The notes under the pieces were generated by a model. It saw only the letters and a program-made list of their open reading frames with translations, did not search any database and was not told the DNA's origin. From Octopus bimaculoides (Eukaryota), in NCBI RefSeq assembly GCF_001194135.2, contig NC_068998.1, positions 49,748,455 to 49,812,454 on the forward strand: a stretch of DNA of 64,000 nt. The letters are read 5' to 3'. Below are positions 16,949-60,385 of this stretch, piece after piece. Positions within the stretch are counted from its first letter, which is position 1. Each line of letters opens with the position of its first letter. A program made the position numbers and the translations under genes.

Positions 16949-19900
16949 ATGAACATTATTATCTTCGCTTTAGTCCTAACTTTTGGTAAGATTTTTCTTC
17001 ATTCATATTCATTTAAATGTAATTTGCAATTCCAAACATGTTCTACGATTTTGAATCTATCATAAAGCTGAACACCAGCCACAAAATAATAAAAAAAACA
17101 TCCGAACACCACACAACACACATACACACATACGCATGTATATGGAAATATATATAAATGTAAACATATGAACATGTTTATGTTCATAAGTGAGAAGGTG
17201 ACCTTTGAGATCACAGGAGCGCGTGGACACGAGATGAAATGGAAAGATAGGGCAGTGTGGATAGCTGCGGTGTATCACTAGAGGGGAAGTTGAAACGATG
17301 AAGCGATGGACTGAAGACCAGCGTGGCCCTGTTTGGCCTCGAAAGAATGGTGGTGATCGGGCGCGTGCGGGCGCGACGTTGACACGCGGCCTTAGCAGTA
17401 GCTACTACCGATAGGCGAGATGCATAGGTTACGTCCTGCATTTAACATGGCTGGACAACCGATACAGGGAGTTAGGTGAATTCCGTTCTCTTCCTCACAT
17501 TACAATTCGCTCACGCTAAAGTTTACATATCTATCTATATATCTATCTATCTATCTATCTATCTATCTATCTATCTATCTATCTATCTGTATGTCTGTCT
17601 GTCTGTCTGTGTGTGCGTCTGTCTGTCTGTCTAATCTGTCCGTCTGTCTGTCTGGCTGGCTGGCTGGCTGTCTGTCGCTTTGTCTCTGTGTGTGTCTATC
17701 TATCTATCTATCTATCTATCTATCTATCTATCTATCTATCTATCTATCTATCTATCTATATATATATGTACCTACGTATCAGTCTAAGCATATATGTATA
17801 TATGTGAATATGTTTAGATTCATTCATGCATATAGGTAAACACACACGTGAACCAAGACTATGCGAGCGAATTTGTTGCATATTTCGAAGATCGAATATG
17901 TCATCATTTCTATTGTAACATATCGATGAATGTTTGAACCATTTTTAAAATCTCATTTGACTTAGATTTTTCTCTCAAAAAGAAGACCTAGTCGGGTATC
18001 TTTTTATAGAAATCCGTTCATACTAGTTCATACTATATTATTTCTGCGCTGTTTATTGACTTGCAGATATGGTAATATATAATAAATTCTCTACTGCACC
18101 TAACTATCTTTGTTTTAAATAATTAGCAAAATATCCGTAACATAAATTTCATCCACCGGACGTATCATCATATAACACAAGCAGGTATAATTTTTTTAAT
18201 CGTTCACCGCGGATTCATTATGTCTTGAAAGGTTTACAGACTATAAAGGATGTTTTACTAAGTGATGTATTAGTTAAAAAGGGGAACAATAACCATCATC
18301 AAGATTTAAGAATTAAAGAAAATTCATTTTCGAAATTTCTAGGTGTTGCGGTGTCAGATGATTGCAATGTATTGGCAGAGAAACGCTGTAGGTTGTCCAG
18401 TAAATATTTCCACACACTCAGACATGATGTCCGTTTTTGCAGGTATATACATATTCAAACTGTAAGAGTTACAATTACAATATTTAAATATCCAAAGTCG
18501 GTGATCAGGCAGAATCGTTAGCTGACCCGGAAAAAAGCTTAGCGACATTTGCTCCAAATTCTCCCGAGGGAGGCTTTGTCTTTTATCCCTTCGGGTTCGA
18601 TAAAATAAGTACCAATCAAGTACTGAGGTCGCTGTAATCGATTTACTAAATTTACCCGAAATTTATGGTTGTGTGCCAAGATATTTATTCAGTATAACAA
18701 TATGTAATTATTTTTCGTCTGTCTCTAGGTTCTGAATTCAAATTCCGCTTTTGCGGTCGAATACTTAAGTACCATTTGCGTACTGGGTCGATGTAATCTA
18801 CTGGCCCCCTCCCCGTCAAAATTTTCCCTTATGAAAGGTAATTGAGTGCCATTCCGAGTTCATGTACCCATATCAACATCCAGCCCATGAGGTATATCAT
18901 TGAGCGGGAACGTAAACTGTATGACATCAATGGACACTGATCAGTTTAGATCGATCGAAAGCTTTCTATATGGCCGACAATCAATTCTTAGCGACTGTAT
19001 TGAACGCTGTGAGTTTCTTTCCCATCATCCACGTTTAGATTGCCGCAATATATAATAACAGGTACTTGGTGAATCGGGAGAATATTTATCTATCGTAAAT
19101 ATTTCTTATACTGCACTCGGTGCGTGAATATCGTCCACTCTCGTGTTTTCAGTTTCGACTAGCTCAAGAAAATCTACTTTGGAAACTGGAGACGTTGATG
19201 TGTATCTGGCGGGAATTAGGTTGAGTGAGCTGTGTCGGCATTCACGGTCGATGTCCCGTTACCGTTTTCAATTGGTCACTCGGTACATAGATCTACAATA
19301 TGGTAGAGCGACAACCATATTGTAAATCAGTGCAGAAATATGAACGACAAGTTTTGAAAATGGAATGAAGAGAACAATAGGAGGCACGTGTAACTGTGTC
19401 ACCGAAAAGGTCAGAGAATATGTGAATATAGAGCTGTAACAGAGAAACTAAAATAATTTTAAACTGACATATATTCTAAAAATGCCGTTGGTGTATTTAA
19501 TTGGTAAAATATAAACATCTCCATGTAAAAGAATTTGTTCCAACATCGAGAACCACGCAAAACAAACACATAAACGTGTGTGCCACAAGAGCGGCCAGAG
19601 ATTTTTTTCCGGCTGATGCACCAAGACTTTCAAATCAGTGGTCTTGCATGGCCGCAATCAAAAGACTGAAAGTATTAAAAGAATAAAAGAATACGCACAA
19701 ACACACACACACACACACACACACACACACACACACACACACACATATATCCGGTATTATGCACGCGATTACTGTGAATAAAATCTAATTTCTTGTAAAA
19801 TAGAATTGAGCAACATAAAAATTTATGCCCGTCCTTCTATGATACTGACAGATTAATGGTTTTGTCTTTCAGACGACTCAGAAGAAATAGAGTTTGTGCT

Positions 19901-60100: not shown

Positions 60101-60385
60101 CACTTGTTCAGATCCAGGGATAGAGAGAATTATACTTCCTCATCTCGCTTTCTCTGGTGACTCCGTGACACCTGAGACGAAAGATCCAACATCAAGTGTG
60201 TGTATGTGTGTGTGTGTGTGTGTGTGTGTGTGTGTGTGTGTGTGTGTGTGATTTATAATGCGAGAACAAGAATCTAACATACATTTATATTTTCTCTTAG
60301 TTTTACAATAATTTTACACTATAATATTTCTTTCTCTGCAGGAATTCACTGGAATGAAGATAACAATCTCCAAGAATACGACTGA
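57133..60385 (+). CDS. Gene E: 90-aa signal-peptide, 6-Cys paralogue, predicted soluble (no hydrophobic tail as assembled). Exons 57133-57169, 58464-58566, 59448-59536, 60342-60385
   Basis: Spliced frame MKYSMLISFLIF/EFVLASDHCTETAKESCHDAMKAYPHIKSNFDFCK/RIKMFEVCLEETHSNCNFYFSIIYHHQCS/GIHWNEDNNLQEYD*. Exon sizes 37/103/89/44 nt. Exon 3 is 1 nt longer than in A, B and D, giving a phase-1 intron. Confidence 0.8.
57575..57957 (-). mobile_element. tRNA-derived SINE, in intron 1 of gene E
   Basis: Minus-strand head gcatggctcgtggctagagtg...gagttcgattcc, followed by a SINE body. Confidence 0.75.
58938..59372 (-). mobile_element. Near-full-length copy of the abundant SINE with internal (TA)n, in intron 2 of gene E
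   Basis: tRNA-like head on the minus strand (gtggttgtgtggtaagtagc...), plus the shared core seen at 12645 and elsewhere. Confidence 0.8.

Follow-up and report, generated by a model that had tools for sequence, protein, structure and literature searches.

What is encoded by a series of very small, cysteine-rich genes on an octopus chromosome, and to which known proteins, if any, are the products related? This question is raised by a 64,000-nt stretch of the Octopus bimaculoides genome (chromosome CM046618.1:49,748,455-49,812,454, assembly GCA_001194135.2), referred to here as the window, in which six paralogous genes were identified: genes A to E on the + strand and gene Z on the - strand at 8624-913. 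The reading favoured in this study, with a confidence that is moderate and somewhat above even, is that these genes form an array of secreted or lipid-anchored micro-proteins which act extracellularly and carry a distant, stand-alone module resembling the N-terminal domain of the repulsive guidance molecule (RGM) family (Pfam RGM_N). The window is a 64-kb slice of a much larger micro-gene array, seen so far only in Octopus.

Gene structure

Each of the six genes possesses four or five coding exons of 27-103 nt, and every intron is GT-AG (Table 1). The exon lengths are, in order, 37, 88-103, 88-91, 27-39 and 60-78 nt, with intron phases of 1, 2, 0 and 0, or of 1, 2 and 1 in gene E. As the coding exons are of about 100 nt or less, a track of open reading frames (ORFs) shows nothing of these genes. 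A regular-expression search of the six-frame translation located an exon encoding C-x7-C-x11-C at five positions on the + strand (19.9, 31.0, 38.7, 51.6 and 59.5 kb) and at one on the - strand (2.9 kb), and an exon encoding C-x7-C...FC was located upstream beside each of the six. The positions and phases of the splice sites are the same across all six copies of both exons. Exon 2 is in every copy preceded by a polypyrimidine tract and an AG before its phase-1 start, and ends two bases past the FC codons at GTA[TC]RT; exon 3 has a phase-2 start after ...YAG and ends one or two codons past the last cysteine at GTAAGA or GTAGGR, again in six of six copies.

The remaining exons of gene A were given by its RefSeq protein, and paralogous exons elsewhere were found by splice-aware scanning. 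The final gene models translate cleanly, and splicing of A, C and D yields sequences identical to the NCBI proteins P0001 (LOC128249865), P0005 (XP_052830521) and P0004 (XP_052830148), the model of Z having 104 residues, the same length as the RefSeq gene called there. An AATAAA signal lies at the stop codon or shortly past it in A, B, D and Z. Hidden Markov models (HMMs) specific to the individual exons found exactly six copies in readable sequence, with the next match seven orders of magnitude weaker (for exon 2, true copies at E <= 3e-8 vs a background of >= 0.37), and beyond these six the exon-level search revealed nothing in the window sequence outside the gaps. Two marginal matches, at 6977-6861 and 22543-22608, were dismissed as low-complexity sequence.

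The first-pass annotation of this stretch had described five co-oriented genes between 16949 and 60385, positions which are indeed the ATG of gene A and the final base of the gene E stop codon. The micro-exon models of A-E were independently rebuilt, and the five genes are co-oriented as described, but the total is six in the window, with Z on the - strand outside that range, and dozens on the chromosome. The array had also been called hidden, and exon size does account for its invisibility to the ORF track; in the GCA_001194135.2 annotation, however, four of the genes (A, C, D and Z) already have coding sequences (CDS) called by RefSeq, under the name 'uncharacterized protein', and only B and E are without a CDS call.

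Protein architecture

The precursors are 90-117 residues in length. Exons 2 and 3 together encode a domain of about 63 residues in which the six cysteines are the only invariant positions, arranged in all copies as C-x7-C ... FC-x8-C-x7-C-x11-C, and neighbouring paralogues are 20-30% identical. The loop from Cys2 to the F of FC spans 11-15 residues; the 12-16 residues previously given for it hold only with the F counted, the rest of the proposed pattern being found throughout. Each domain probably contains three intramolecular disulfides. AlphaFold2, applied to the domain with an alignment of 52 domains of the family, returned a model with a predicted local distance difference test (pLDDT) score of 84.4 and helices at residues 4-16, 30-44 (kinked) and 48-62. 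The predicted fold is thus a small helical bundle with three main helices, in agreement with the helical, disulfide-bonded domain that had been proposed from the sequence.

A signal peptide, composed of a methionine, a hydrophobic core of 9-11 residues and small residues, is present in A, C, E and Z, and D has a longer candidate. The signal peptides previously noted in A, C and E are thus borne out by inspection and hydropathy, but that list lacked the candidate of D at 47238-47310, which RefSeq uses. Exon 4 encodes a polar spacer of 9-13 residues in which small residues are clustered (HGGAD, ENNAE, ESSSE, HGCNN or QNGGT), and exon 5 encodes 19-25 residues consisting mainly of a hydrophobic stretch of 13-17 residues that runs up to or near the C-terminus; the small-residue clusters (GGA, NNA, SSS, NGG) lie 6-11 residues ahead of this tail. 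A signal peptide, a small-residue omega site, a spacer and a terminal hydrophobic stretch are the textbook layout for attachment by glycosylphosphatidylinositol (GPI). This GPI-signal-like pattern is absent in E but occurs in A, B (NNA..VYVTAIMVMLSNVI), C (SSS..FMFVAGAVIVFAM followed by 8 polar residues), D and Z, the spliced models bearing out the earlier description of a polar spacer and terminal hydrophobic tail in A-D and of none in E. The products of A-D and Z are accordingly described here as putatively GPI-attached. The C-terminus of E is acidic (14 residues, GIHWNEDNNLQEYD), and because the hydrophobic tail is absent, this protein should be secreted. The assignment of anchors is made less secure by the 8 polar residues that follow the hydrophobic stretch of C and by the weakly hydrophobic tail of Z, and signal cleavage and the GPI signal were both judged by inspection and hydropathy only.

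Possible relationship to the RGM N-terminal domain

The N-terminal domain of RGMB is a three-helix, three-disulfide module, and the RGM N-terminal domain is the BMP/GDF-binding part of GPI-anchored co-receptors (PMC7354924). The first-pass annotation had found the cysteine spacing to match none of the Ly6/three-finger, GDNF-receptor/GAS1, insect OBP and Aplysia attractin patterns; a match to no known pattern at all is not supported, as the block FC-x8-C-x7-C is common to the RGM N-terminal domain and RGM_N recurs among Pfam matches to the family. Two multi-domain relatives, P0006 (29.1 bits) and P0010 (37.9 bits), exceed the curated RGM_N cut-off of 24.2, and RGM_N matches 24 of 52 single domains at E <= 0.1, whereas every other Pfam family matches one domain only. 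When a profile of the 52 domains was searched against all PDB sequences, the first four matches were chains of the RGMB N-terminal domain (E 0.013-0.08), with RGMA at 0.5. Alignment by hhalign to the RGMB N-terminal domain, with human RGMB alone as target, gave a probability of 71% and a P of 3.9e-5 over 27 columns, the family profile aligning to RGMB residues DSEFCKALRAYAGCTQRTSKACRGNL, so that the FC-x8-C-x7-C block is matched along with similar flanking residues.

The contribution of the cysteines to these scores was controlled for by 2000 shuffles each of RGMB and RGMA in which the cysteines stayed in place and all other residues were permuted. The real score was reached by 1/2000 shuffles of RGMB (19.3 bits) and 2/2000 of RGMA (15.3 bits), the shuffle mean being 3.8 bits, and the rarity of such shuffles therefore indicates a similarity to RGMs that exceeds cysteine spacing alone. 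On these grounds the balance tips slightly towards the octopus domain being a stand-alone module remotely related to RGM_N. Four positions past Cys5, a conserved aromatic residue aligns with RGMB Leu103, which inserts into a hydrophobic pocket of the ligand (PMC7354924); it could equally be a core residue.

Several observations weigh against this relationship. All six window proteins score below the RGM_N cut-off, the best being Z (16.7 bits, E 0.009) followed by gene E (15.9 bits). The aligned part extends over only about 27 residues, from Cys3 to just beyond Cys5, and the outer spacings are C-x7-C and C-x11(12)-C in octopus vs C-x4-C and C-x21-C in human RGMs. Foldseek found no match for the domain model in the PDB, RGM N-terminal domains included, and a weaker full-length model gave nothing useful. 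Additionally, no Pfam match to RGM_C was obtained in the window proteins and their relatives, and the module is not followed by an RGM C-terminal domain, the octopus proteins ending 10-30 residues past Cys6 with only the spacer and hydrophobic tail.

Most of these observations would also be expected if the domain were an orphan helical, cysteine-rich fold born in octopuses, with the FC-x8-C-x7-C block and its flanks arising by convergence because helical disulfide scaffolds allow few spacings; the rest of the description would be unchanged. The sub-threshold window proteins, the short alignment and the differing outer spacings are consistent with such an origin, as are the lack of any Foldseek neighbour in the PDB or in BFVD, where nothing useful was found, and the lack of relatives detected beyond Octopus among the 30 of 37 whose source was checked. 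An orphan fold is nevertheless thought somewhat unlikely, given that RGM_N is the sole recurrent family and has two relatives over its cut-off, that RGMB tops the reverse search of the whole PDB, that cysteine-fixed shuffles almost never reach the real score, and that the predicted helix count, six-cysteine count and putative GPI tethering all agree with RGM N-terminal domains.

Other cysteine-rich families

One relative, P0016 (A0A0L8GPX5), carries the UniRef label 'GDNF/GAS1 domain-containing protein', the only exception, by automatic domain-based naming, among relatives otherwise named 'uncharacterized' or 'hypothetical'. This label, together with the fact that GFR-alpha proteins are likewise helical, disulfide-rich, GPI-anchored co-receptors (for cystine-knot ligands), would allow the octopus domains to be minimal co-receptor modules within the GDNF/GAS1 (GFR-alpha-like) superfamily. 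Such a placement appears very improbable, as neither Pfam nor PDB searches reproduce the label: the GDNF family (PF02351) matches none of the window proteins, P0016 or the 52 domains even at permissive E-values, and PDB searches with the family profile or P0016 turned up neither a GFR-alpha nor a GAS1 chain at E <= 10, nor did a search with P0010. GFR-alpha domains are also larger, with more cysteines.

Ly6/uPAR domains are beta-rich, with 8-10 cysteines and a C-terminal CCxxxxCN motif. A Ly6/uPAR identity was ruled out by the six cysteines, the all-helical prediction and the lack of a UPAR_LY6 Pfam match in the window proteins, their relatives and the 52 domains. Insect OBP, saposin and attractin-type patterns were judged not to fit, given the cysteine count, the cysteine spacing and the predicted helical fold. 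No other cysteine-rich family, Ly6 included, was among the PDB matches of the 52-domain profile. Sub-threshold Pfam matches of the window proteins to EBA-175_VI, Phospholip_A2_2 and DUF7952 were dismissed as noise because none of them recurs across the family.

The wider family in Octopus

A full HMMER search with a six-sequence profile against 1.84 billion representative proteins returned 37 relatives at E <= 1e-3, and all 30 of those whose source was checked come from O. bimaculoides, O. sinensis or O. vulgaris, the first of these species contributing at least 22 distinct loci. Word-indexed homologue searches were nearly blind to both the octopus family and the RGMs, returning two matches each. 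The O. bimaculoides members lie nearly all on the window's own 55.6-Mb chromosome, where members were mapped to 49.56, 49.74 and 50.18 Mb, each beside more genes of about 100 residues with the same exon-2/exon-3 signature, and the array extends over at least 640 kb. The O. vulgaris members have accessions in a consecutive run (CAI9735826-CAI9735857) on a single chromosome. This distribution supports the earlier suggestion of a lineage-restricted family that expanded by tandem duplication.

Most members are single-domain proteins with the tail present or absent, and some possess two, three, four or nine domains in tandem (P0006/8/9/13/16, P0029, P0010, P0003). Of 50 entries, 35 have an N-terminal hydrophobic h-region and 29 have a hydrophobic tail at the C-terminus, and tail-less members of the secreted type occur outside the window as well. 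In O. vulgaris CAI9735838, a B-like exon 3-4 (65% identical, spacer included) is fused to a C-like gene; gene B and the adjacency of B and C are therefore conserved between species. No literature on the octopus family was found in searches with the LOC identifiers, with RGM_N/PF06535 or with octopus combined with GPI, cysteine-rich or RGM, and the family is present in public annotation only as unnamed predictions.

Two further observations concern genes neighbouring or resembling those of the window. In LOC128249866 (P0024/P0043) and LOC128249943 (P0026/P0044), RefSeq isoform X2 departs from X1 solely by skipping the spacer exon, and because the GPI omega site would be located there, the attachment of these proteins may change with alternative splicing. 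An exon-3-like match (E 1.6e-5) without a called gene is found at 7250-7408 (+) of locus L005, about 2.6 kb upstream of LOC128249866 and just to the left of the window, and may be an unannotated or decayed family member.

Assembly gaps, annotation and the status of genes B and E

The position of the window on CM046618.1 follows from chromosome sequence around genes A and D, of which 26,764 and 26,905 bases agree with the window without a single mismatch. The window has a G+C content of 33%, abundant microsatellites and 16 runs of N. None of the 16 touches a coding exon, the closest lying 55 nt past exon 3 and 67 nt ahead of exon 4 of gene A, and no reading frame in any of the six models is required to cross one. 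Two gaps lie in intron 3 of A, one in intron 1 and two in intron 2 of D, one in intron 1 and two in intron 2 of Z, and the rest are intergenic; the RefSeq model of A splices over both intron-3 gaps exactly as the rebuilt model does. Most gaps (e.g. 4169, 5063, 7905, 9709, 20457, 21256, 28365, 47492, 49389) have simple repeats such as (TA)n or (CA/TG)n at their edges, which translate as YIYIYI, CVCVCV or THTHTH, and look like assembly breaks at microsatellites and not lost complex sequence.

Gaps may nevertheless conceal first exons. The signal-peptide exon of B was not found in readable sequence, and it probably lies in the 671-nt gap 28365-29035, a placement chosen because the first introns of its paralogues measure 1.3-3.0 kb (1.3-1.5 kb in A, C and E). 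In D, the RefSeq first exon (47076/47238-47310) is unusually long, and a canonical 37-nt exon 1 could be situated inside the gap 47492-48375. Upstream in-frame ATGs in the RefSeq CDS of D (47076) and C (36523) prepend 54 and 18 residues to the signal-peptide-like segment, and these N-terminal extensions are probably annotation artefacts, since the first exons of A, E and Z have 12 codons. A candidate signal exon of C at 37283 (MLYKITLLF...) was dismissed, being without a phase-1 donor, and 36577-36613 is the correct exon.

Whether all six genes are active also has to be considered. Some of them, especially B and E, might be silent or decaying, with an intact appearance that reflects recent duplication, and it counts against treating both as working genes that neither has a CDS call in GCA_001194135.2 or a protein among the 1.84 billion representatives. 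The first exon of B is moreover not identifiable, and in E the donor phase is shifted and the tail is lacking. We nevertheless regard silencing or decay as quite unlikely. Both genes retain six cysteines, open frames in all exons, canonical splice sites and strong polypyrimidine tracts, and since they are intact at 20-30% identity to their neighbours, their divergence is therefore old and without decay. Exons 3 and 4 of B are conserved in the O. vulgaris gene model and its missing exon coincides with an assembly gap, and for E there is the precedent of tail-less secreted members elsewhere in the family. Micro-exon genes of this type are unseen by ORF-based scans and their first exons are readily lost in assembly gaps.

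Table 1. Coding exons of the six paralogous genes, in window positions.
Gene	Exon	Position	Strand	Description
A (LOC128249865)	1	16949..16985	+	signal peptide, 12 codons + 1 nt; donor G/GTAAGA, phase 1; spliced product P0001
A	2	18343..18442	+	Cys1, Cys2, loop, FC (Cys3)
A	3	19873..19960	+	Cys4, Cys5, Cys6
A	4	21948..21980	+	11-residue polar spacer; small-residue cluster as candidate omega site; starts 67 nt past gap 21256-21881
A	5	23653..23712	+	19-residue hydrophobic tail + stop, then AATAAA
B (no CDS call)	2	29895..29982	+	splice-site and Cys pattern
B	3	31000..31087	+	Cys-pattern match
B	4	31378..31416	+	spacer YNDQSNSFENNAE; counterpart in O. vulgaris CAI9735838 (P0011) YNDKSKSFENNAE
B	5	32062..32121	+	VHFQSVYVTAIMVMLSNVI + stop, overlaps AATAAA
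C (LOC128249936)	1	36577..36613	+	MKYYFVLILLMV + 1 nt; RefSeq CDS begins at in-frame ATG upstream, 36523
C	2	38154..38247	+	Cys-pattern match
C	3	38698..38788	+	Cys-pattern match
C	4	41238..41264	+	spacer YESSSEENK, identical to P0005
C	5	42208..42285	+	ISFRFMFVAGAVIVFAMHDYNLWTQ + stop, identical to P0005
D (LOC128249749)	1 (candidate)	47238..47310	+	MLSGISCVFTFCAFHLIILNDVCE + 1 nt; donor G/GTAGGA; RefSeq CDS begins upstream at 47076
D	2	49129..49228	+	Cys-pattern match
D	3	51571..51658	+	Cys-pattern match
D	4	52213..52245	+	spacer EENHGCNNRAK, identical to P0004
D	5	53921..53980	+	TGLLTVLITTYLLLLAKII + stop, overlaps AATAAA
E (no CDS call)	1	57133..57169	+	MKYSMLISFLIF + 1 nt; donor G/GTAAGT
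E	2	58464..58566	+	Cys-pattern match
E	3	59448..59536	+	donor phase 1, differs from other copies
E	terminal	60342..60385	+	(G)IHWNEDNNLQEYD + stop; acidic C-terminus without hydrophobic tail
Z (A0A0L8HFY8; 104-aa RefSeq gene)	1	8588..8624	-	MKIYIFIAFLIC + 1 nt
Z	2	5506..5605	-	Cys-pattern match
Z	3	2842..2929	-	Cys-pattern match
Z	4	1803..1832	-	spacer SQNGGTAQKK
Z	5	913..972	-	GMTELLLSIAASSYLMRYL + stop, then AATAAA

Repeats and other features

Remnants of mobile elements are found in two of the introns. A DDE_1 (pogo/Tigger-type) transposase remnant occupies 39284-39888 (+) in intron 3 of gene C, in two overlapping reading frames with Pfam E-values of 4.9e-4 (profile positions 2-88) and 8.6e-7 (positions 88-175), and this decayed DNA-transposon insertion helps to explain the 2449-nt length of the intron. 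In intron 2 of gene D, directly past the gap 49389-49574, a 144-residue ORF at 49580-50014 (+) matches the reverse transcriptase family RVT_1 (E 7.2e-7, 29.5 bits vs a cut-off of 29.6), a retroelement fragment of the long interspersed nuclear element (LINE) type.

The region 15052-15472 has ORFs on both strands (Thr-rich on the + strand, Val-rich on the - strand), a G+C content of 0.40, and an AT skew of 0.28; it is unmatched in Pfam and resembles a low-complexity repeat more than a gene. The ORFs at 26776-27558 (-) and 61692-62168 (+) encode similar peptides, ..FDCGHAGAPPLVEQ.. and ..CDCSYAGTPPLVE.., which suggests that one interspersed repeat is present at both sites; these adjoin microsatellites and the gaps 26973-27384 and 61697-61997.

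Possible function and comparison with known systems

The octopus proteins would act extracellularly as small ligand-binding or recognition modules, with surfaces that may have changed rapidly (neighbours being 20-30% identical) around a disulfide scaffold that stayed constant. A binding or recognition role is suggested because a fixed scaffold, fast surface divergence, tandem amplification and alternation between anchored and soluble forms typify families of this kind. If the RGM link is real, ligands of the TGF-beta/BMP family (BMP/GDF-type) would be the most concrete candidate partners, although this is speculative. A bolder scenario, to which we attach little credence at present, is that octopuses freed the BMP-binding head of an RGM-type co-receptor and amplified it into dozens of GPI-anchored and secreted micro-proteins, serving as traps or co-receptors for TGF-beta/BMP ligands or as a recognition code (neuronal, sucker/chemotactile or gamete). 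Were this true, the freed and amplified RGM head would be a cephalopod counterpart of the protocadherin and Ly6-type expansions.

Cephalopod novelties are usually framed as expansions of protocadherins, C2H2 zinc fingers, GPCRs and reflectins. The array described here adds one more expanded family, so far seen only in Octopus, which gene callers partly miss, as in the case of B and E. If the link to RGM_N is true, the family would be a known module in a new free-standing and massively amplified form, a rare case of the ligand-binding module of a co-receptor being released as a diversifying gene family, and binding to BMP/GDF-type ligands would be a testable expectation; if it is false, the family would represent an octopus orphan fold.

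Among known systems, the GDNF/GAS1 domain (PF02351, SM00907) resembles the octopus module in being helical, disulfide-rich, extracellular and carried on GPI-anchored co-receptors for ligands of the TGF-beta superfamily, but the octopus family is without a reproducible Pfam or PDB sequence match to it. The logic of the genes is similar to that of Ly6/uPAR, with tandem arrays, precursors of about 100 residues, a signal peptide followed by one cysteine-rich domain and a GPI signal, and tail-less secreted variants, whereas the fold and cysteine pattern are unrelated.

Few RGM genes are known from non-vertebrate animals. The RGM N-terminal domain (PF06535; PDB 4UHY, 4UI0, 4UI1, 6Z3H) shares with the octopus domain a length of about 60-70 residues, three helices (predicted in octopus), six cysteines and the central [F]C-x8-C-x7-C with flanks of the form D..FC[KR]xL..[YF]..C, and, as in RGMA, RGMB and RGMC-hemojuvelin, the octopus module is placed on proteins that appear, on the evidence of their sequences, to be GPI-anchored. 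The octopus genes are not classed here as RGMs; their products, unlike RGMs, have no RGD/vWD-like region, GDPH autocleavage site or RGM C-terminal (neogenin-binding) domain (PF06534). In contrast to the three RGM genes of vertebrates (PMC7354924), the octopus genes number dozens, stand in tandem and evolve fast.

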